Source: Paramicrosporidium saccamoebae KSL3 (taxonomy: Eukaryota > Fungi > Cryptomycota). Taken from it: DNA of 14,495 nucleotides. A program made the position numbers and the translations under genes. Position 1 is the stretch's first letter, and every line of letters begins with the position of its first letter. The notes beneath the pieces were generated by a model, which was given only the letters and a program-made list of their open reading frames with translations, did not search any database and was not told where the DNA came from. Of this stretch, positions 1,878 to 13,969 are shown piece by piece. Where the stretch lies: contig MTSL01000007.1 in NCBI GenBank assembly GCA_002794465.1, positions 1 through 14,495 on the forward strand, read 5' to 3'.

Positions 1878-2582
1878 ATGAGTGTCGCAGCCAGCGCCGA
1901 TTTAGGAAGTGGCGCTCCCTCCCCCCTCCAGCCGATAATGCCGACGAAACACTGGACACCGCGGCAGCAACTACAGAACCTCAACGACTTTCTCTCACTG
2001 GGCCCACTGGACCGATGGGACTTTTGGGCATCCTTTGCCTCGTCCTTTTGGGCACCCGGAGCTGTGGCTCTGCGCATACGTCTGGGCCTTGAGGAGAATG
2101 ATGGCGTGTTTGAAATACCCTCCACCCTCGTTTCACAATTCTTCTGGACATGGAGTTCCAGCGGGGCCATGCGAAGACTGTTCTTCGACACAACGCAGGC
2201 CACTGAAGGCAGCAGCGTAACAGGCCCCACTCTTGCCTCCTCCCACGCCGTCATCGAGTCGATCCTTCTGGAAGGTGCTTTGCTCGTCCGTCAGCAAGCA
2301 CGAATACGCTGCATTTTTGACCTTTATGGCCGGATCACTCTGCTAGACCTGCAGGTGCATGCCCATGATGAATATGTTCTTTCAGCCGTGGCGGGATCGG
2401 TTTTAGCCAGTAATGGTCTGTCCATGTGTCGCTACGGGTTCCCAATGAGTGTATATCGTCAACTAGAATTGCTACTGGTAGTACGTGAAATGTTGGGCGA
2501 AGTGACAAAGGTGACTACTGTGCCTTGGCAAGCGATGGGATCCAAGCGGGCCCGCAAGAAGAAACACCATTCGAATGAGTAA
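1878..2582 (+). CDS. LIM-domain-binding (LDB/SEUSS/Adn1-type, LIM_bind domain) transcriptional cofactor, about 234 aa
   Basis: The pattern WDFWASFASSFW..ALRI..FEIP..LVSQFFWTWSSSG..L..RCIFD..GRI..LDL..HDEY..GF...YRQLE...V.EM follows the LDB dimerization domain. A C-terminal basic NLS (KRARKKK) is present. ATG 1878 is chosen because the upstream in-frame part overlaps ALG7; ATG 1938 is possible. Confidence 0.75.
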   Translation: MSVAASADLGSGAPSPLQPIMPTKHWTPRQQLQNLNDFLSLGPLDRWDFWASFASSFWAPGAVALRIRLGLEENDGVFEIPSTLVSQFFWTWSSSGAMRRLFFDTTQATEGSSVTGPTLASSHAVIESILLEGALLVRQQARIRCIFDLYGRITLLDLQVHAHDEYVLSAVAGSVLASNGLSMCRYGFPMSVYRQLELLLVVREMLGEVTKVTTVPWQAMGSKRARKKKHHSNE

Positions 2583-2687
2583 TTGTATAATAATATTTGT
2601 AGATAATGCGAGCCTGCTATCCCAAGGGCTCTCATTGTGAATTGTAAACCATTTAATAGATTATAATCAAGTTTTTGGGACCTGTGC

Positions 2688-2735
2688 TTTAGGTTTGGTT
2701 TTAGGTTTGGTTTTTGGATTTGTTTTTAGTTTTAA
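2688..2735. repeat. Degenerate 12-bp T/G-rich tandem repeat
   Basis: TTTAGGTTTGGT x2 exact, followed by TTTTGGATTTGT and TTTTAGTTTTAA. Confidence 0.75.
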
Positions 2736-2868
2736 GCTGTCCTTTGGATTTATCGGATCCGTCTTCTATTCATTGCATTTGATCATACAATGAGTCGGTT
2801 AATATGGATTGGAGTGATCACACAATCAGTGTTATAGTGCTGGCTTTATTTTTAACTTTATTTGTGAC

Positions 2869-4132
2869 ATGGAGTGCACCATATGTCTGGCGCCGCTGGA
2901 ACGACACCTGGCTGCTATCCAATGTACCACCAAACTGTCATTGATTGGTAGGTGGACATGTGTTTCATAAGGTCTGCGTACAGGCGCTGCGTCAGACAAG
3001 CCGAGAACGGGCCAAATGTCCACTGTGTCGTGCCTCCCTCCGCACCATTGTCAATCTCTTCCTCGACGGTCCCCCAGGAGGCGTTGTGCTTGAAGACGCA
3101 ATTTTGGAAGAGACAGCACTTGATGGGACGGTGGAAAGAGGAGAAGAGTCTATTAACGAGTCCATGCACGCGTCTATGCACGAGTCCACAGAATCAGAGG
3201 ATGAATTAGAGTCCATGAGACTGGATTTGGAAGAGGCCGAGGCAGAGATTGAGGCTTTAGAAGAAAATCTGCGGGTGGCCATGACACAACTCCATCGACT
3301 CACTGAAGAACGCGCCTCTCACGAGGACTCACTACAGGGTGCCTTGGCGGGGATGCAGCAAACACTCTTTGCCGCCACACAGCGCTGGGACAAGGAAAGG
3401 AAAAGTCTTGAGCGAGAAGTCATTGGAGCCAAAATGGCAAAGGAAGATGTGACACGACTGTTGGAGGAGAAGGAATCAAAATTGATGCAGCTGGGACGCG
3501 AGTTGGAAGAGCTGCAATCAGTGCGACTGTCGCGCGAGATGGAACGCGTCTTGACTGATCTCAATGAAACACGCACAAAGGAGCATCTCGAGTCTCTGAA
3601 AGCGTGGTCCAAACACGACCTGATTTCCCATTGCTCCCTCCTCACTATTAATGGACGACGTCAAGAAACGTATATTTACACTGGAATAATGATCTTTAGG
3701 GACTTGGAAAAGATGGGAAAAGAGCTTCGAAAGGCCAAAATTGAATTGGAACTGGCCGAACGACAATTACGAAAACTGAGTCACAATCAGTCAATTCAAC
3801 AAATTGAGAAGAATATTCAGAGTGAGAGAAATGTTCAGAGCGGGAGAAACATTCAGAGCGAGAGAAATATACAAAATCTTTCCACGAATATTGGTCCAGT
3901 TCCGATGAAACGCAAAATTCTGTTGGAGGAATCCTCTTTGATTACTATTCCACAGCCCGTTGGTCACACCGTGTTAGAAGATACATCCACGCTCGTCACT
4001 CCACGAGCAATTAATCGTACTACAAGTATTGCGATCCCACCAAAGTTTACAACCACTAGGCTAAATTCTACGGTGGCTGATGGATGTGGTGGGACCAAAA
4101 AGGTGATTCATTTTCCAGATCGGCGTTTATGA
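2869..4132 (+). CDS. TRAIP: TRAIP-like RING-H2 E3 ubiquitin ligase with coiled coil; join(2869..2923,2952..4132), probably also lacking intron 3670..3699 (401-411 aa)
   Basis: Splicing a 28-nt intron gives MECTICLAPLERHLAAIQCGHVFHKVC...KCPLCR...IVNLFLD, a complete RING. A long coiled coil follows, and the C-terminus contains DGCGGTKKVI. RING/coiled-coil E3 is secure; TRAIP orthology rests on remembered motifs (AAIHCGHTFH, KLFFD, DGLGGRTKFI). Confidence 0.7.
2924..2951 (+). other. 28-nt spliceosomal intron (RING gene)
   Basis: GTACCACCAAACTGTCATTGATTGGTAG; removal joins T+GT into the third RING Cys (IQC-GH). Confidence 0.9.
3670..3699 (+). other. Probable 30-nt in-frame intron (RING gene)
   Basis: GTATATTTACACTGGAATAATGATCTTTAG is AT-rich and has the same size and ends as the other introns. 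Its translation YIYTGIMIFR interrupts a coiled coil (RRQET|DLEKMGKELRK). Confidence 0.7.
3812..3877 (+). repeat. 18-bp coding tandem repeat (about 3.7 copies)
   Basis: Encodes NIQSER NVQSGR NIQSER NIQN. Confidence 0.85.
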
Positions 4133-4422: not shown

Positions 4423-5574
4423 ATGTCAGCGACGGATCGTGACCCACTGATAGATGTCCTGGGGCGGGTCCTGGAGGTGCGTGCCTCCCCCCTCGACATG
4501 CTGCTGACCACTTTTAGTGTAGGCTGTATACTGATTATGGTAGCTCTCTATCTGATATATCTTGTGCTGAGGAGAATCCGTGGCAAAACACACCACAGGA
4601 GCAAAGCGGATCGTCCCGCTTGGATTGGAGCACTCATATTGGCCGGATCGACGTGGATCGTCTCCAACTTGACGTTGGCGGGTGTCATATCCTTTGCACC
4701 GGAGGACGAGTATAGCTGCACTTATCTCACCTTTCTCGGCTCCCATATGGCCTACATTTTCTGGCTCGCCTTGGTGCTTTACAAGTTGGTGCGCAAATTC
4801 TGGCAGCTTCGACTGGTGGGGAAGAAGCCCCCACATGCTCTCCTCGCCATTTTCCTCCTTGTAATCCCTTATATCGTCCTACTAGGCGTGGCCTCTTATT
4901 ATTCTCCATCAAAACGCGATGAATTTGATATTTGCCACGTGGAGGTGAATTGGCAATGGCCCGTGTTTATGGCGCTGGTCTTGTATTTGCTGCTGTTTGC
5001 CTTTCTCGTGGCCAAGATACAAAAGACAATTGGCGAGCATCACGAAATCATCCGCTATACCATCTTCCTGGCCACATCGTTTGTTTTCCCACTTGCAGAA
5101 CTAATAGTCTGTATGACTTCTATTGACGAATCTATTGTAGCGCATCGCTGTCTACTGACGCTTGTTGTGCTGATTGTCCTTGGGAACATGGGACACATAT
5201 TCATTCTCGTTCTGCGTGGAAGATATGCTAAAACAGCGGGCATTCTGCCTCAGGACACATTACGCGAACTGCCAGCCATGTCCATATCCTCCCTCTCCTC
5301 CACCCCCATCGTTGACGTTCTCAATACCACTCTCACCGACTCGCCCCTTGAGCTGCTCTCCATTCCTGCAAACCTGCCGCCAATGCTGCAACGGCCCAGG
5401 AGGGAAGGCGAATTGATGCCCGAGTTTGAGAGGTTTGTGGAAGGGCTTCCCGAAGATCTTGCAAGGGAGGTTGATCGTAATCGTGGCTACTTTGCCTACA
5501 AGACGCGACCGAGGACCCGAACTGTTGTGGAATTTGACATAGACAAGGCAGAATCGTATGTAAATCCAGATTGA
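4423..5574 (+). CDS. Seven-transmembrane GPCR-like protein resembling the TM region of 7TM-RGS1, about 383 aa
   Basis: Seven hydrophobic segments, with Cys before TM3 (EYSC) and Cys in ECL2 (DICHV). It also has LYKLVRKFWQL..GKKPP, LLVIPY, CHVEVNWQWPV, LVAKIQK..GEHHEI and VAHRCLL, a short N-terminus and a 119-aa cytosolic tail. ATG 4423 is used in place of GTG 4396. Confidence 0.7.
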   Translation: MSATDRDPLIDVLGRVLEVRASPLDMLLTTFSVGCILIMVALYLIYLVLRRIRGKTHHRSKADRPAWIGALILAGSTWIVSNLTLAGVISFAPEDEYSCTYLTFLGSHMAYIFWLALVLYKLVRKFWQLRLVGKKPPHALLAIFLLVIPYIVLLGVASYYSPSKRDEFDICHVEVNWQWPVFMALVLYLLLFAFLVAKIQKTIGEHHEIIRYTIFLATSFVFPLAELIVCMTSIDESIVAHRCLLTLVVLIVLGNMGHIFILVLRGRYAKTAGILPQDTLRELPAMSISSLSSTPIVDVLNTTLTDSPLELLSIPANLPPMLQRPRREGELMPEFERFVEGLPEDLAREVDRNRGYFAYKTRPRTRTVVEFDIDKAESYVNPD

Positions 5575-5763: not shown

Positions 5764-6978
5764 ATGGAGAATCTCTTAGACTGCCTGGTGGATGGGACCA
5801 TCTCTTCAGGGCAATTAGATTCTCTTCGAGAGCTTTGCAGAGAACCCATCAATGCCGAAGCAGTGCTCGCCCGGAACGGAACTTTTGATGCGTTATTAAG
5901 ATTGCGAGAGGTAAATGCGATGAAGACGATGGCCAATCTGCTGTATCACAGTCCGGATGCGCGCGCCCGCTACACTGGCGAGAATGCCAATGAATTGGTG
6001 GAATTTGCCAAGGAGAATGGCGGCGAGGAGAGGTTTGTGGCACTAAGACTGCTGTTCCTCGTGTCTATTGAGAAGGACACTGCGATTGCGTTAAAAGATT
6101 CCGTGTCGACATTAATGCAGTTGGCGGGAGATGACCGTGAGGTGGTGGAAGTTTTGAGGATTCTCTATAACACCTCAAAGTATTCCTCTGCGCCCAACTA
6201 TTCTGCCTTTGCCTGGAAGTATTTAGAGTCTGGCGATCCGGTAATAGTTGGGAATGTGTATAATCTATTCCTCAACATGTCCGTCTCCACGCTACGACAC
6301 GAGACTGGTCATACAGCAGAACTGCTTCAGTCCTCTTTGAATATTCTTTTGCGCCATTATGAGACACCTGATGGACATTGCGATGCTATAGCCTTCTTGC
6401 CCGCTGCCTGTCTCACCATTCACAGGCTGGCAGAGGCTTTCCCCGACTTGCGCAAGACGCTCCGCAGATCCATACTACCGTCCACCTTGTACACTTGGGA
6501 ATCTCTTAATATTTTAGTGACCGTACTGTGCCAGTCGATCAAGGTGACTCGACGAAAGCTCGACTGGCTAGGCTACTAAAGAGTCCCGACGATCGGCTTT
6601 CAAGTTCGACTGGCGATCTCTTTTTCGTCCTCTGTACCAGAAAAGGTACTGGCTAGCCCCACGTTAACTGTAGTGCTTCGGCTCTTGTATCATCTGGGAT
6701 ATGGTCGGATCGCCGGTTTCCTTTACGCGCAAGATCTACTGCCCTCGGCTGACATATTGACTCAAACTGCTGACCTCGGCTCCTCCTCCGATGAAGAGGC
6801 GGTCAGAAAGGATGGAATGAGTGGCATCGATCCGGTTACTGCTCAGACCATCAAAAACTCGCACGAATCAAATGAAATGACCGAGACAGAAAAGGAGGAG
6901 GAATCCAAGCGATTACTGGAGCTGTTCGACCGACTTGAAAAGACTGGTATTAAAGTATTTCCGGCCGGTCCGCCCTAA
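5764..6978 (+). CDS. RIC8: Ric-8/synembryn G-alpha GEF and chaperone; join(5764..6488,6518..6645,6674..6978), 385 aa
   Basis: Motifs AMKTMANLL and RFVALRLLFL are present. Splicing gives ILPSTFDRTVPVDQGDSTKARLARLL...LFFVLCTRKVLRLLYHLGYGRIAGFL, followed by SSSDEE, GIDPVTAQ and MTETEKEEESKRLLELFDRLEKTG, all typical of Ric-8. Confidence 0.92.
6489..6517 (+). other. 29-nt intron (RIC8)
   Basis: GTACACTTGGGAATCTCTTAATATTTTAG; removal restores the frame with the LP..DR.P..G motif. Confidence 0.9.
6646..6673 (+). other. 28-nt intron (RIC8)
   Basis: GTACTGGCTAGCCCCACGTTAACTGTAG; removal joins LFFVLC to the GYG..AG motif. Confidence 0.9.
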
Positions 6979-7005: not shown

Positions 7006-7079
7006 GTCTCGTTGGTGTAGATGGTTATCACGCCTGTCTAACACACAGGCGGTCCCCGGTTCGAGTCCGGGACGAGACA
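7006..7079 (+). tRNA. tRNA-Val (anticodon AAC), intronless
   Basis: Acceptor stem GTCTCGT/ACGAGAC, D arm TGGTGTAGATGGTTATCA, anticodon stem CCTGT/ACAGG with loop CT-AAC-AC (anticodon 7040-7042), T arm GGTTCGAGTCC, discriminator A. CCA is not encoded. Confidence 0.97.
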
Positions 7080-7482: not shown

Positions 7483-8001
7483 TTAGAGGAGCTCTTCGAT
7501 TTTGGATGTCATGGCCTTTGGCTCATCGTTGGGAGCAAATCGGGCGACAGGGTTGCCTGATTTGTCAATGATAAACTTTGTGAAATTCCACTTGATGGCA
7601 TCAACTAGGAAGCCGGGACACTTGTCTTTAAGGAATTTCCAGAGCGGATGAGCATCAGAGCCATTGACATCAACCTTTTCTGCCAGGATGAAGCGCTTAT
7701 CGTATTGTTCCGCAAAGGCTTTGATCTTCTCCGCCTCGTCCTTTTCCTGGTTCATGAACTGATTGCAGGGGAACATCATAACTCTTAGTCCTTTGTCATA
7801 GTACTTGTCGAGTAGCTCGCTGAGACCAGAGTAGTTGCTCTTGGTATATCCACAGTAGGTGGCGGCATTGACAACAATGACCACCTGACCGCGGAATTGC
7901 GAAAAGTCGAGCTGCTGGGACCCGAGAATGTCACGGGCGGAAAAGTCGTAGAAGGTTTTGGGGGGACTGCTCATGAAGCGACGGGCCGCGGTTCGGAGCA
8001 T
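7483..8001 (-). CDS. GPX: Cys-type glutathione peroxidase, GPx4/PHGPx-like; starts at 8001 (presequence-bearing) and 7974
   Basis: FYDFSARDILG, VIVVNAATYCG (Cys = TGT at 7852-7854), FPCNQF..QE, KVDVNG..AHPLWKFLK, IKWNFTKFIID. The ORF-track extension to 8304 is antisense shadow of DCC1. Confidence 0.95.
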   Translation of the reverse strand: MLRTAARRFMSSPPKTFYDFSARDILGSQQLDFSQFRGQVVIVVNAATYCGYTKSNYSGLSELLDKYYDKGLRVMMFPCNQFMNQEKDEAEKIKAFAEQYDKRFILAEKVDVNGSDAHPLWKFLKDKCPGFLVDAIKWNFTKFIIDKSGNPVARFAPNDEPKAMTSKIEELL

Positions 8002-8035
8002 CTTGTACGGGGTAAACTCTGATTGGCCAGGAGAC

Positions 8036-9076
8036 ATGTTGAGGTTCTCGGGGGATTTGGATTGTGGCAAGAGGAGGTATTTTGAGTTGAGTGATTCAAA
8101 ATTGGAAGAGTTGGTTAGGAGGGGCGATAAGCTCCATGTAAAGGGAAGCGGTGACGAGGAACTAATAATATGTTCAGAGGAACACACGTTTCGGGTGCGA
8201 GAGGTGCACACTAGCAATTTGCAGCTGCTTGTCTCACAGGACACTGTGACCGAGATGGCCACATCGTTCCTGGAGGCGAAACGGATACCTGGAAAGCTGG
8301 TCAAGCTGAAGGACTGGCTGGAGGCGTGTCCTTACGACGGACCCGACGAAGAGCCGCAGCCTGAAGCATTGGCCAGACTACGGGTTGGAGGGCTCTTTGG
8401 AGATGTGCAAGCAAGTGATTGCGAGATTCGAAATTTCCTATCAGATTCCGGCGCAATTCTCATCAATGGATGTTATCGGCTGGTCAGTGCTGGGCATCTT
8501 TGTCGATTCTTCAAGATGCTCTTTGCGTTACTAACAATGAACGATCTCTGCAGTTGCAGTGTTTTGGAAAAGTGCACAATTATGACATTATTTGCCTCTG
8601 ATTCCGAGGGTGAAGAGTTTCCTCCAAACGTAGTGGAACATTTATTGTCAGTATACATGGATTCCACTAGTCGATTGGATCAGCGGAGGATTGGGCGCTT
8701 CTTTGCGGAGGAGCTATTAAAGGCGCGTCCGATTTGGCTTGAAAGCGAGTTTCTTTCCGCTTGGCGGCAACTCCTCGGCGACCTTGAGCCCTCCATTTCC
8801 TACCTCGGCGATCTCATCCTCAAAGAACCAGTACCGGGCATGACTGAAACCCGGCTTGCCTACTTTCCTGCTTCACGACTGCCCTTAGAGCCGGAAGCAC
8901 GGTTTGCACGGTTATTTGAAGTGCGTCCTAGGTGGGAATTGACTGAAATTGAGCCCTTTGTGGAAGGTGCGGCACGGGCTTTGGAAGTAGAGCTATTGGA
9001 TTTATTAGTGAAACATGCCAGGATTAGTACTACACCCAACGGCATTAAAATAGTGACGGCCCTCCTATCCGTCTAA
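8036..9076 (+). CDS. DCC1: Sister chromatid cohesion protein DCC1 (Ctf18-RFC subunit), about 346 aa
   Basis: FEL..LEELV.RG..L.VKG...EELIIC....TF.VREVHTSNL.LL, ASD.EI..FL....AILING, W...EF..AW..LL, LP.EP..RF..LF.VR.RW...EI.PF, and a C-terminal LLVKHAR. Confidence 0.9.
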   Translation: MLRFSGDLDCGKRRYFELSDSKLEELVRRGDKLHVKGSGDEELIICSEEHTFRVREVHTSNLQLLVSQDTVTEMATSFLEAKRIPGKLVKLKDWLEACPYDGPDEEPQPEALARLRVGGLFGDVQASDCEIRNFLSDSGAILINGCYRLVSAGHLCRFFKMLFALLTMNDLCSCSVLEKCTIMTLFASDSEGEEFPPNVVEHLLSVYMDSTSRLDQRRIGRFFAEELLKARPIWLESEFLSAWRQLLGDLEPSISYLGDLILKEPVPGMTETRLAYFPASRLPLEPEARFARLFEVRPRWELTEIEPFVEGAARALEVELLDLLVKHARISTTPNGIKIVTALLSV

Positions 9077-10798: not shown

Positions 10799-13700
10799 AT
10801 GTATTTACAATTTGGCGGGATGTTGAGCAGCACTGCTGAAAACGCACTGTACTTTCCACTGTACTCATGCATGACTATTAATAGGAGCAGGACACGCACC
10901 CGTCGATCCCTTACCAAACCCAATTATGTCGAACATGGCAGTTCAGCATCGGAGCCCGAGTCGGAGAGTGATTCGGGGCCTATAGTGGATGTTCTAGTAG
11001 AATCACAGGATTCCGTTGAGACTAAACAAGCTCGACTGAAATCTCATGGACGGCTTGGTAGACTTGCCCGCGATGAGCAGACTTCTTCAGGAGAAAAAAT
11101 TTACGATCAGTTGAGTGGGAGTGGAACGGCTATCAAGCTGGTTGTCGATGAATGGACAATGTTGTGGGATGATAGTCCCGAAACGGCTGCTCTGCAGCTT
11201 GTCAATTTCGTATTGCTAACAAGCAGCATCCGACAACCGATGACACGTGCAGATTTGGAGCATCCCGACCCTGCGGCTGTCCTTGCTGAGCTCCAGGAGA
11301 CTTGGACTTCTACTGGAAGCGAATATCTCTTGTCGTCAAAGCTAAAAACAAAGCCGGCAAAGAGCATGAAGCTGAATTTTGCCGAGTTCTGGGGACGATG
11401 GTCAAATGTTGTACTGATTGAGGATGCGTCGCGGCTAGTGATAAGCTGGCTTATGACAATGAGCAGCTCTGGATATCGACCGTTGCGACATGCAGCCTCG
11501 CTGGCGTGTTTTAATATTCTGCGTGGATGTGCGGTGCATTGCTCTACTTTGGCCAAGGAATTGGACAAGGTCAGTCGTCTCAAGAGCAGCGGAATGGTGG
11601 ATTCCATATCATCGCAACTTGCCTTGTTAGAAAAGACGATCCAAATGATCTTTGATGGTGTCTTTTTACAGCGTTTCCGTGATGTTGACTTTAATATTCG
11701 CATCGAAGCCGTGACTAATCTGGAAAAATGGATCGAGTCGTATCCCGAAGTGTTCCTGGACAATTCATACCTCCGCTATATTGGTTGGGCTCTCTCTGAC
11801 CGCATCTCTGCCGTGCGCTGCACCAGTCTGGAAGTTTTTTCGGTCCTTTACCGCGATGGTTCGATGAGAGATGGGATGGACTCGTTCACTCAGCGTTTCT
11901 TACCACGAGTCCTGGAGATGGCTGAGAGAGATGTGGAACTTGCGGTGCGTGATGAGGCGTGTCTTCTAGTTGCTGAATTGTACCGCTTTTGTGAGGATAA
12001 GGGTGAATTTAAAGAAAATCTTGGCTTTCTGTTGGATTTGGTGCGGTTCGCCCAGCCGATTACCAAATCTGGCCTTGAGGCGCTCTTGACTGTTATCTTT
12101 GACGGAGAGTCCTACGAGTCATTTAGAAAAAAGGCAGAGCTTGCTGTCAGTCAAATTAAAGACCCGCATGCGGATGATCATCCAGAAATGTTGATATGCT
12201 GCCAGATTGCCAAGTTTGCCGATGCTGTGACTGATGGAATTCCTGTTGATCGTCGTCTGCTTTGCGTGGAGCATTTTATTGGGGTTGCAAAGCGGACGAT
12301 CCCTGCCCTCCGAGATATAACTCTATGGGTCCGCCTCACTGAGGCTGTGCTACTCGGAAAGTCATTCAAGTCCAACGTCGCTGATCGCCAGCAATGGGAA
12401 TCCCTGTTCAACAATATTGCCAGTGTTAATGGATTCATGATGGTGTTGGAAGCAGTGACAAGATACTCCTTTGTCTATGTCAATTCCATGGCCGATTCAA
12501 CGCGACAGATGCATTGTGGACTCAATAAGAGCAACTCGAGGGATTTGTCCAATCTTCTCGTCTCCATCGTCCCCAACTGGATGCCGGAAGTAGTGAAGCA
12601 GTCTGGCTGTTTGGCAGCCTTCCTGGATCTGCTGGGTCTGGCAGATGCCGTCAGTCTCTGTGCTGGCTGGACTGATGCAGTTGCTGCCATCGGCGGAATT
12701 GCTGTTCTCTGCAACAACTCTGCCACGGCCGAATCGTTAGTCAGCTTGGCGCGTTACTGGCAGCAAGAAGAGATTACCGGGGCGTTTACCATTTTCCTCA
12801 AAACCATCCCCGAAGATTCTGCCTGCTGCCAACGCTATGCTAGAATGGCACTGGGAAAGATTCCATGGTCTGAAGTGATCCGCGGTGGCTTCTGGGCTCG
12901 GCTTGGCGCAGCTGCGCCTTTTGTTCCCGTGCCGGATTGGATTCGCTTGTCTAGCGCTCTGAAGGATCTGGTGGACAAGATTTACATTCTATTAGAAGAT
13001 GGCAAATCGTTGTCGTTGAGCGACACGCCGGAAGAGTATATTACTCTCGAGTCAACAGTCTTACCGGCCCTACTCACAGCTCTGGTCAAGGGATCGGCAT
13101 TTTCCGAGAGCGATGAAGATTTTTATTCGGTACTGACTGGACACTTTTCTCAGAAAACGATCCACACCGGTGCACATGTACTCGGGTTGCTCTGTGACCT
13201 CAAAGATGCCAAAGTTGACAATGACACAGAGGAGGAGATGATAGAGTTTATTGAGCAAGTTGGGGCCACTGAAGAAGGACTGATCCCTTCGCTAAGTCTT
13301 GGCAAGCTGTTTTTAAATGGAGCCGTGAGCGAAAAGGCCTTGGTGGCAGTCATGACCCTATATGGCCATCATTACAAAGGAGTTGTTGCCCAAAAGTGTT
13401 TCCTTTCATTGTGGAACTCTACCGTGAGCAAAGTAGGCGATCAGACTGTCGACCTGATTAGCGTCATCTTTGGCGCCTTGGGGAGCGACTTGGAAAACGA
13501 CTTGGAGGGACTTGCGCTATTGAGTAGTCTCTTTGCCGATTCTCTAAGAGATAATCCACAAGCTCGCAATTCCAACTCATTAGTACGCCTCTTTATCAGC
13601 ACTATTGAGGCTGGAAAGGATGGAGCTCGTCTAGACGCTCTCCTCACGAGTCTCGCAGTTTGGCTCACCCCTAATCTCGCTGCTGAAGTGTTGACATCTT

Positions 13701-13969
13701 ATCGTCGAGATGTGGATCGTCGTCCCGCTTTGGCCTCTGACACACTAACCAAAGCACTGATCAAAGCATCAACTAAGCGAACCGTTCCTGCGCGTCGTAG
13801 ACCCGTCACTGGGGGAAGTAAGCTCTGCAAGGAGGTCTCGGATGACGAAGATTTGATAAACTCGGAGGCGGCTACCCCGACCAAGGAGTTTGCAGGACTG
13901 AAAATGTCCAGCGAGTTGGCATTGCCATCATCCCCTCTTCCCGCCCGCAAGCGTACCATCAAAATGTAG
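10799..13969 (+). CDS. SCC3: Cohesin subunit SCC3/STAG/IRR1; start uncertain (10799, 10820 or 10871)
   Basis: STAG domain WLMTMSSSGYRPLRHAASL and SCD GVFLQRFRDVDFNIRIEA...LEKWIESYPEVFLDNSYLRYIGWALSD...VR, then RVLEMAERD, a HEAT-like helical body and low-complexity termini. Confidence 0.95.
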   Translation: MYLQFGGMLSSTAENALYFPLYSCMTINRSRTRTRRSLTKPNYVEHGSSASEPESESDSGPIVDVLVESQDSVETKQARLKSHGRLGRLARDEQTSSGEKIYDQLSGSGTAIKLVVDEWTMLWDDSPETAALQLVNFVLLTSSIRQPMTRADLEHPDPAAVLAELQETWTSTGSEYLLSSKLKTKPAKSMKLNFAEFWGRWSNVVLIEDASRLVISWLMTMSSSGYRPLRHAASLACFNILRGCAVHCSTLAKELDKVSRLKSSGMVDSISSQLALLEKTIQMIFDGVFLQRFRDVDFNIRIEAVTNLEKWIESYPEVFLDNSYLRYIGWALSDRISAVRCTSLEVFSVLYRDGSMRDGMDSFTQRFLPRVLEMAERDVELAVRDEACLLVAELYRFCEDKGEFKENLGFLLDLVRFAQPITKSGLEALLTVIFDGESYESFRKKAELAVSQIKDPHADDHPEMLICCQIAKFADAVTDGIPVDRRLLCVEHFIGVAKRTIPALRDITLWVRLTEAVLLGKSFKSNVADRQQWESLFNNIASVNGFMMVLEAVTRYSFVYVNSMADSTRQMHCGLNKSNSRDLSNLLVSIVPNWMPEVVKQSGCLAAFLDLLGLADAVSLCAGWTDAVAAIGGIAVLCNNSATAESLVSLARYWQQEEITGAFTIFLKTIPEDSACCQRYARMALGKIPWSEVIRGGFWARLGAAAPFVPVPDWIRLSSALKDLVDKIYILLEDGKSLSLSDTPEEYITLESTVLPALLTALVKGSAFSESDEDFYSVLTGHFSQKTIHTGAHVLGLLCDLKDAKVDNDTEEEMIEFIEQVGATEEGLIPSLSLGKLFLNGAVSEKALVAVMTLYGHHYKGVVAQKCFLSLWNSTVSKVGDQTVDLISVIFGALGSDLENDLEGLALLSSLFADSLRDNPQARNSNSLVRLFISTIEAGKDGARLDALLTSLAVWLTPNLAAEVLTSYRRDVDRRPALASDTLTKALIKASTKRTVPARRRPVTGGSKLCKEVSDDEDLINSEAATPTKEFAGLKMSSELALPSSPLPARKRTIKM
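10849..10884 (+). other. Candidate 36-nt in-frame intron near the SCC3 5' end
   Basis: GTACTTTCCACTGTACTCATGCATGACTATTAATAG has the same GTAC...TAG signature and size as the verified introns. Removal keeps the frame (AENAL|SRTRTRR), but no conserved motif tests it. Confidence 0.45.

Follow-up and report, generated by a model that had tools for sequence, protein, structure and literature searches.

We analyzed a 14,495-nucleotide stretch of DNA (contig MTSL01000007.1, here called the window) from Paramicrosporidium saccamoebae KSL3, a non-flagellate intranuclear parasite of amoebae belonging to the Rozellomycota (assembly GCA_002794465.1; genome accession MTSL00000000; PMC5701793). A gene at 4423..5574 (+) in this window encodes a seven-transmembrane (7TM) protein that is best described as a 7TM protein of the plant regulator of G-protein signaling 1 (RGS1) type, with a dedicated tail, predicted to serve in docking, replacing the RGS box. 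An earlier note on this DNA had read the protein as an RGS1-type receptor with a degenerate or remodeled GTPase-activating protein (GAP) tail. The RGS1-type core of that proposal was borne out by profile hidden Markov model (HMM) and hhalign comparisons, and the degenerate RGS tail was contradicted by Pfam, hhalign, and the conserved motifs that the tail contains. Our comparisons used three alignments, which comprised the 9 closest members of the protein's family (A1), 29 family members (A2), and 16 plant RGS1 proteins (A3).

Translation showed that the reading frame at 4423-5574 (+) is uninterrupted, as the earlier note had it, and encodes 383 codons plus a stop in a complete, intron-less coding sequence. 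The deposited gene model (P0001/L015, 345 aa) covers 4537-5574 and begins at M39 inside the first transmembrane segment (TM1). Because homologues align from an N-terminal NVR.S..D motif onward, the alignments support the upstream ATG at 4423 as the correct start, which adds 38 residues, restores TM1, and completes the seven-helix set. We conclude that the deposited gene model is truncated and that its start belongs at 4423. With this start, only 22 residues lie ahead of TM1. The window 7TM protein matched no Pfam family, and a PDB sequence search with it found no match either. All of the motifs on which the earlier note relied occur in the order it gave: FWQLRLVGKKPP at aa 126-137, LLVIPY at 145-150, CHVEVNWQWPV at 171-181, VLYLLLF at 186-192, and VAHRCLL at 239-245. 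The translation also agrees with its count of 119 aa for the tail (5215-5574).

Similarity of the membrane core to the 7TM half of plant RGS1 was evident with two profile methods. An Arabidopsis RGS1 (AtRGS1) seed served for retrieval only; it returned 320 real proteins, and the comparisons used real sequences. Each of the best 120 of these 320 was a plant "regulator of G-protein signaling 1" entry containing the RGS domain PF00615. The AtRGS1 motifs that the earlier note had quoted proved to exist, as the 16-sequence plant RGS1 consensus reads AFQLYYIFVKRRLPP, LILLPW, RCHMG..W.IPV, ALYVAAL, and VASRFLL. When whole family and plant RGS1 profiles were compared, hhalign gave a probability of 93.8% (E 1.8e-7) over 184 columns spanning TM2 to TM7. 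The transmembrane domains (TMDs) alone gave 90%, and a reversed RGS1 control gave 0.2%. Scored with an HMM built from the family TMD, the N-terminal regions of 112 real RGS1 proteins averaged 24.7 bits (maximum, 41.4), compared to a mean of -6.5 bits (maximum, -0.5) for reversed RGS1 sequences and a mean of -5.3 bits (maximum, 16.9) for 15-residue window shuffles in which TM positions were kept. The resemblance of the core to RGS1 7TM domains that the earlier note had proposed was thus far above controls in both assays.

We also compared the family TMD HMM with TMDs of class C G-protein-coupled receptors (GPCRs). For GABAB2 and mGluR1, the TMD sequences were confirmed as 100% identical to PDB chains, and the GPR179 and GPR158 fragments were reconstructed from search output. 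The HMM scored plant RGS1 at 27-34 bits and its TM3-7 at 29-34 bits, GPR179 at 9.3 bits, GPR158 at 2.9 bits, mGluR1 at -4.2 to 2.7 bits, and GABAB2 at -4.4 to -5.1 bits. Because RGS1 reached 29-34 bits and the class C TMDs at most 9.3 bits, these scores support a core that resembles RGS1 in particular and not class C in general.

The predicted structure of the core is that of a GPCR. AlphaFold2, run on alignment A1, predicted seven confident helices at aa 23-53, 63-85, 98-130, 139-160, 178-203, 207-236, and 238-264, in agreement with the seven TM segments that had been read from the sequence. On the DNA, the seven-helix core (aa 23-264; 4489..5214, +) consists of TM1 at 4489-4581, TM2 at 4609-4677, TM3 at 4714-4812, TM4 at 4837-4902, TM5 at 4954-5031, TM6 at 5041-5130, and TM7 at 5134-5214 (all +), and its assignment draws on the AlphaFold2 helices, Foldseek GPCR matches, and homology to the plant RGS1 7TM domain. 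The predicted local distance difference test score (pLDDT) was mostly 80-95 across aa 23-264, and the tail (aa 265-383) was modeled with low confidence. Searching the PDB with Foldseek returned GPCRs exclusively. The top 13 matches (E<=1e-3; best E, about 3e-4) were all class C receptors, namely, GABAB, CaSR, mGlu3, and GPR156, with class A receptors close behind and GPR158 lower in the list. By this measure, the predicted core has the class C transmembrane fold. Basic residues, read from the sequence, cluster in intracellular loops (ICLs) 1, 2, and 3 and immediately after TM7, a distribution that fits a predicted topology with the N terminus outside and the C terminus inside.

Several short signatures mark the core, and some of them are shared with plant RGS1. 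The ICL1 motif SKADRP (S60-P65; 4600..4617, +) is a family signature that does not vary among the 9 closest members. At the top of TM3, Cys99 (4717..4719, +), the presumed disulfide partner of Cys171 in extracellular loop 2 (ECL2), aligns with Cys84 of plant RGS1 and with the initial Cys in the GPR179 fragment. Both cysteines are invariant in the 9-sequence set and correspond to the standard GPCR disulfide pair. The end of TM3 together with ICL2, YKLVRKFWQLRLVGKKPP (4780..4833, +), contains invariant K121 and R124 and matches AFQLY..KKRLPP of RGS1. The K121/R124 pattern resembles the class C K3.50-x-x-R motif, with an ambiguous register, as HMMER sets K121 two residues off K3.50. The ECL2/TM5 signature CHVEVNWQWPV (C171, H172, W176, P180, and V181; 4933..4965, +) aligns residue for residue with C153, H154, W159, P162, and V163 of RGS1. 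In the family-to-RGS1 alignment, the pairs C99/C84, C171-H172/C153-H154, W176/W159, and P180-V181/P162-V163 all involve RGS1 residues that are invariant in plants. GPR179 carries LCHHDRW where the family has this signature. At the ICL3/TM6 boundary, the motif HHEIIRY (5038..5058, +), with H206, H207, R211, and Y212 invariant, aligns with FHEPRY of GPR158 and GPR179. E208 in this motif aligns with GPR158 E609, which is the residue that ICL3 contributes to the K3.50/K7.51 ionic lock (PMC8611064).

Relative to canonical class C receptors, the family occupies a marginal position. One member, P0009, matched Pfam 7tm_3 (PF00003) at 36.8 bits, with a gathering cutoff of 33.5, over profile positions 70-243 of 251. 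At E<=0.01, 7tm_3 was matched by 2 of the 29 members, and the window protein was unmatched. We also observed that the 7TM halves of several plant RGS1 proteins, P0049 and P0052 among them, match 7tm_3 over the whole profile (positions 7-249 of 251) at 26-28 bits, just below the gathering score of 33.5. By such profile scores, the plant RGS1 7TM domain is a fringe class C-like domain. The profile comparisons also show the family core to be more remotely homologous to class C (7tm_3) GPCRs than to plant RGS1.

The cytoplasmic tail (aa 265-383; 5215..5571, +) is mostly disordered and has five conserved short motifs, as indicated by AlphaFold2, Pfam, hhalign, and block conservation. B1 is the Ser-rich block SISSLSS (5281..5301, +), a candidate phosphorylation cluster. 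Its SLSS.SS pattern recurs in most members, in line with the S/T-rich patch described in the earlier note. B2 is a short helix, VDVLNTTL (5311..5334, +; AlphaFold2 helix 297-304), with the family consensus LDDiN.Lm.E in the alignment. B3 is a basic cluster, LQRPRR (RPRR; 5386..5403, +), and is the most conserved block of the tail. B4, PEFERFVEGLPEDLAREVDRNRGYF (5419..5493, +), is predicted to form two short helices and a hairpin, has the consensus P.FE.FV..LP......DR..GYF, and contains residues D351, R352, and G355, which do not vary within the close set. Among candidate docking motifs, B4 is the best. B5, RTRTVVEFDIDKAESYV (5512..5562, +), is a C-terminal strand plus helix with the consensus RTRTV.EFD.D.A..Y[LIV]. 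AlphaFold2 run on a tail-only alignment of 11 orthologues gave a predicted template modeling score (pTM) of 0.24, with short helices at tail residues 33-39, 71-83, and 109-116 and a small hairpin. Across the 29-member family, the fraction of sequences carrying the majority residue was 0.53 in B3, 0.43 in B4, and 0.44 in the transmembrane domain, compared to 0.19-0.25 in the linkers, and the tail blocks are kept even in members that are 20-30% identical. Because these motifs are conserved as strongly as the membrane core across the 29 members, the tail is by its conservation pattern a functional module of its own and not a relic.

We did not detect an RGS domain in any part of the protein. Pfam RGS (PF00615) had no match in the whole protein at E<=1, nor in any of the 29 members. 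The comparison of the tail with this family that the earlier note had suggested also came out negative, as the tail alone had no Pfam match whatsoever at E<=10. By comparison, plant RGS1 proteins match PF00615 at 47-55 bits. When hhalign was used to align the family tail to the RGS box, linker, or complete C terminus of plant RGS1, the probabilities were 0.1-0.2%. Thus, the claim that an intact RGS box is missing from the tail was correct, and the "faint RGS-like pieces" reported there were not recovered by Pfam at E<=10 or by hhalign against the plant RGS box (0.1%). On the same Pfam, family-wide, and hhalign evidence for the box and linker, we rejected an RGS remnant in the tail. The plant RGS1 linker (KKRE.FEFQRMGQALGIPDSG) was rejected as a homologue of B3-B4 (BLAST high-scoring segment pair at E 0.94, HMM score not significant against shuffles, and 0.2% with hhalign). 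A GoLoco-like reading of F..FV..L.......VDRNR was also considered, and Pfam gave no match to it at E<=10.

The possibility that an RGS box lies on a hidden 3' exon is excluded in practice by the arrangement of the locus. The hexamer GTATGT that had been noted at 5556 as a potential splice donor is present; it overlaps a conserved Tyr codon and is missing at that site in 8 homologous loci. The stop codons of homologues fall a few residues past a shared ...A..Y[LIV] motif, and 189 bp separate the 7TM stop codon from the start codon of the downstream Ric8 gene. Because homologues end at the same place and Ric8 starts 189 bp downstream, no RGS exon would fit. A spliced RGS exon starting from GTATGT was also rejected on the properties of two real nearby introns, which are 28-29 nt long and begin with GTAC, and on the lack of conservation of the hexamer.

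A second line of similarity leads to the animal receptors GPR158 (mGlyR) and GPR179. In a PDB-wide hmmsearch with the family profile, GPR179 was the sole significant match (8d1b_B, E 1.2e-5; 8irj_A, E 1e-4), and the alignment extended from TM3 through TM7 into the tail, placing HHE..RY on FHEPRY and the ECL2 pattern CH....W on CH...W. In the tail, family B4 (ELMPEFERFVEGLPEDLAREVDRNRG) aligned without gaps to GPR179 GLGRSFMRYLAEFPEALARQHSRDSG, a stretch also given as GRSFMRYLAEFPEALARQHSRDSG, and 10 of the 26 residues were identical. Upstream of B4, a basic cluster (RPRR in the family and KKRG in GPR179) and a Ser-rich/acidic stretch occur at nearly equal spacing in the two. The full family HMM scored GPR179 at 26.5 bits, a value reached by 0 of 1,000 window shuffles (maximum, 14.0), and GPR158 at 18.2 bits, which 3 of 1,000 window shuffles reached; GABAB2 and mGluR1 scored -4.9 and -9.1 bits, respectively. 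With a tail-only HMM, GPR179 and GPR158 scored 12.1 and 9.3 bits, and no shuffle (0 of 1,000) reached either score. Comparison of the family with GPR158/179 by hhalign gave 73.5% for the full profile and 30% (E 5.5e-4) for the tail only, with reversed controls at 0.1-0.3%. The aligned GPR158 segment falls inside residues 665-775, a region that suffices for RGS7-Gbeta5 binding and holds the Ha and Hb helices contacting the RGS7 DHEX domain (PMC8611064).

Several observations weigh against this link. The tail-only profile found nothing in the PDB at E<=10, its hhalign probability against GPR158/179 was just the 30% given above, and TMD-only scores were weak (9.3 bits for GPR179 and 2.9 bits for GPR158). 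The B4-type motif is less well preserved in GPR158 than in GPR179. For the long Leu/Ile-rich helix Ha of GPR158, we found no clear family equivalent, and the predicted helices of the family tail are short. The class C TM7 motif [FL]-x-P-K-x-x is not in the family, which has H-I-F-x-L-V-L-[RK] where GPR179 has IFIPKFWK. Comparison of the plant RGS1 TMD with the GPR158/179 TMD revealed no direct similarity. A literature search found no paper naming AtRGS1 together with GPR158. We consider the similarity to GPR158/179 to be suggestive, a lead rather than an established homology.

Taken together, the RGS1-type core and the conserved tail are probably those of an RGS1-type receptor that stands alone and uses its tail to recruit a partner from the cytosol, and we infer that the protein regulates signaling by heterotrimeric G proteins. 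In our proposed model, the 7TM protein would reside in the plasma membrane with its N terminus outside and act on heterotrimeric G-protein signaling. The tail would form a docking platform in which a Ser-rich patch for regulated phosphorylation and a basic cluster are followed by the F-E-x-F-V-x-x-L-P...D-R-x-x-G-Y-F helices. Through this platform, the receptor would bring in a partner from the cytosol, most likely an RGS protein in trans and less likely G-alpha itself or an arrestin-like adaptor. Recruitment of an RGS protein in trans is modeled by analogy on animal GPR158/GPR179 with RGS7-Gbeta5 and on yeast Ste2 with Sst2. Fungal DEP-domain RGS proteins (Sst2/FlbA) bind receptor tails. We favor an RGS partner because fungi possess such receptor-tail-binding proteins and because RGS is the known output of both of the most similar families, being fused in cis in plant RGS1 (PMC3718340) and bound in trans by GPR158/179 (PMC8611064). 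RGS7-like architectures have been reported across opisthokonts (PMC3971589).

Other explanations for the protein were considered. One is that it descends from an RGS1-type receptor-GAP whose RGS box has decayed, so that the 119-aa tail is a degenerate linker plus RGS remnant. The hhalign and family HMM results for the core would suit such an origin, 7TM-RGS fusions in chytrid fungi, filastereans, and ichthyosporeans make an RGS-bearing early-fungal ancestor plausible (PMC3971589), and the halves of Setaria RGS1 have been separated by transposons, so that uncoupling does happen (PMC3386157). However, the tail has no RGS similarity by Pfam or hhalign, and none of the 29 members keeps the RGS box that would mark a recent loss. 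Furthermore, short motifs shared across the family in a tail predicted to be non-globular form the pattern of selected linear motifs and not that of a decaying helical bundle, leaving this explanation decidedly improbable in our view.

Alternatively, the protein could be an ordinary class C-like orphan GPCR acting as a guanine nucleotide exchange factor (GEF), with loops that couple G-alpha, Ric8 as the G-alpha chaperone, and a tail that functions only in desensitization or trafficking through Ser-cluster phosphorylation and adaptors. Consistent with this idea are the GPCR fold with class C receptors as top Foldseek matches, the P0009 match to 7tm_3, the conserved TM3 Lys/Arg and ICL3 Glu motifs, the Ser-rich tail patch, and the adjoining Ric8 gene. 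In addition, GPR156 is a class C receptor without an extracellular domain that can be constitutively active (PMC11621567). Against a GEF function, the closest relatives are RGS1 7TM domains and GPR158/179, whose known output is RGS and not GEF (PMC8611064 and PMC3718340), the class C TM7 PK motif is missing, and the conservation of B3-B5 is more elaborate than a simple phosphorylation tail needs; we regard an orphan GEF as rather unlikely. The least probable alternative is a seven-helix protein outside G-protein signaling, with a transporter-like or trafficking role, whose likeness to GPCRs and RGS1 reflects a shared helical-bundle architecture. The window protein has no Pfam family and the organism is a reduced intracellular parasite, as would be compatible with such a protein, but the sequence homology stands well above composition and topology controls, the GPCR hallmarks of the Cys pair and the ICL3 Glu motif are kept, and every top structural match is a GPCR. 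We thus favor a stand-alone RGS1-type receptor with a docking tail over these alternatives.

The family to which this receptor belongs is small and very thinly sampled. A word-indexed search of 5.8 billion proteins yielded 9 homologues, and an exhaustive phmmer search of 1.84 billion representatives yielded 27 at E<=1e-3. Among about 15 billion proteins, the family amounts to 27 clusters when grouped at 50% identity. Searching the 5.8-billion-protein set a second time, with a profile of the 29-member alignment, found nothing new, and a metagenome contig scan with the 9-sequence alignment produced no confirmed relatives. The other members were found in metagenomes, in Logan assemblies, and in two NCBI assemblies without annotation, and they have no informative protein names. 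A literature search combining Paramicrosporidium and GPCR found no paper. With neither Pfam nor other annotation for the family, its 29 sequences could seed a new family model.

The window is part of a compact eukaryotic contig, and its gene order is an ALG7-like glycosyltransferase gene (-), LIM_bind, RING, the 7TM gene, Ric8/synembryn, tRNA-Val, glutathione peroxidase (GSHPx) (-), Dcc1, pirin (-), and STAG/Scc3. We observed that the block ALG7 - LIM_bind - RING - 7TM - (Ric8) - GSHPx - Dcc1 - pirin - STAG is largely retained in L001, L003, L007, L010, and L013 and that synteny is much better kept than the 7TM protein sequence, even at about 25% identity. Because the conserved gene block persists even in L010, whose 7TM protein has an identity of only about 25%, the family is by its gene order a fast-evolving orthologous gene of a Rozellomycota-like lineage. 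The L010 contig, from an activated-sludge metagenome, has flagellar/ciliary Pfam matches at 2455-3102 and 15405-16147 (CCDC39; WDR90/IFT122-like). Paramicrosporidium is reported to be without flagellar genes (PMC5701793), and because L010 has such genes, the family would span flagellate and non-flagellate members of the lineage.

The Ric8/synembryn neighbor, a G-alpha GEF/chaperone gene (5764..6978, +), was identified by Pfam PF10165 matches at 2e-11 and 9e-19 and by comparison with the Ric8 gene of L001. It contains two introns at about 6489-6517 (29 nt, GTACAC...TAG) and 6646-6673 (28 nt, GTACTG...TAG), and their removal gives a 386-codon model that matches the intron-less Ric8 gene of L001; the collection model is also 386 aa. 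A Ric8 neighbor fits a G-protein context for the 7TM protein, and we give this little weight. Ric8 adjoins the 7TM gene in 3 of 9 loci and is separated from it by an intervening gene in one further locus. Two findings detract from the support that this neighbor could lend to a G-protein role: Ric8 is missing from the otherwise syntenic blocks of L010, L013, and L004 and is found in the block in the closest relatives only, and linkage to the 7TM gene is at least as frequent for Dcc1. The adjacency is probably just inherited gene order. Functional coupling as a reading of the adjacency was therefore downgraded, with 3 of 9 loci in favor and syntenic blocks without Ric8.

Other features of the window are noted for completeness. 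A tRNA-Val gene (anticodon AAC) lies at 7006-7079 (+) between the Ric8 and glutathione peroxidase genes. Two sister-chromatid-cohesion genes, Dcc1 (7958-9076, +) and STAG/Scc3 (10799-13969, +), are <3 kb apart and are linked also in relatives (L010). An open reading frame at 2945-4132 (+) starts with a RING finger of the C-terminal type, after which comes a long coiled-coil-like region, and has only weak Pfam matches; the collection model of this gene is 398 aa and starts from 2883.

Beyond its annotation, the family may inform how 7TM proteins and RGS function are linked. Plant RGS1 is a sugar-sensing regulator, and the role of its 7TM half by itself has been debated since its discovery. An RGS1-type core under selection without an RGS box implies an autonomous function of the core, such as sensing, scaffolding, or trafficking, and the family thus offers a comparative handle on what the RGS1 7TM half does alone. 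GPR158 and GPR179, the second-best relatives of the family, are to our knowledge the only GPCRs of animals that are known to act through the docking of an RGS complex. A more far-reaching proposal, which we offer tentatively and hold to be doubtful, is that the plant RGS1 7TM domain, the Rozellomycota family, and GPR158/179 represent one ancient class C-like lineage that holds RGS at the membrane beside G-alpha, with RGS in cis in plants and many protists and in trans in animals and this family, and with B1-B4 homologous to the RGS7-binding helices of GPR158/179. If this were true, the protein from Rozellomycota would be a "missing link," the first to combine an RGS1-type core with a GPR158/179-type tail, and the receptor-plus-RGS signaling of plants and that of animal neurons may share a common root.

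We also compared the family with known systems. It shares with GPR156 and canonical class C TMDs (GABAB, mGluR, and CaSR) the overall fold, the TM3-ECL2 disulfide cysteines, a K..R pattern where TM3 ends, and an E..[KR]Y pattern where TM6 begins. In contrast, its sequence similarity to GABAB2 and mGluR1 is essentially nil, and its TM7 is without FxPKxY. The 22 residues before TM1 contain no Venus flytrap (VFT) or Cache ligand-binding extracellular domain, and GPR156 and plant RGS1 are likewise without one. The 7TM-RGS fusions of chytrids, filastereans, and ichthyosporeans and the fungal GprK-type class VI receptors are, as is proposed for the family, opisthokont 7TM proteins linked to RGS function and have been reported from early-branching fungi (PMC3971589). 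They carry an RGS box and the family does not, and none of them was within reach of single-sequence HMMER searches of the 1.84 billion representatives.

GPR158/179 resemble the family in the ECL2 CH...W and ICL3 [FH]HE..RY motifs and in a post-TM7 series of a Ser/acidic patch, a short helix, a basic cluster, and [SE]F.R[FY][LV]..[LF]PE.LA. They differ in having a Cache/EGF extracellular domain, the long coiled-coil helix Ha, and the TM7 L/FxPK motif, none of which the family has. Plant RGS1 and the family both begin with a short N terminus ahead of the 7TM core, and significant profile similarity extends over TM2 to TM7. They have in common the TM3-top Cys, C-H-x4-W-x2-P-V in ECL2/TM5, a basic ICL2 that leads into a Pro-rich start of TM4, and an acidic ICL3/TM6 residue, and both are borderline for Pfam 7tm_3. 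The family differs from plant RGS1 in being without an RGS box, in a tail unrelated to the plant linker, and in its own motifs SKADRP in ICL1 and RPRR, FERFV..LP, and DRNRGYF in the tail. RGS1 occurs in plants and the family in Rozellomycota and their environmental relatives, where two polypeptides would do the job that plant RGS1 does with one.

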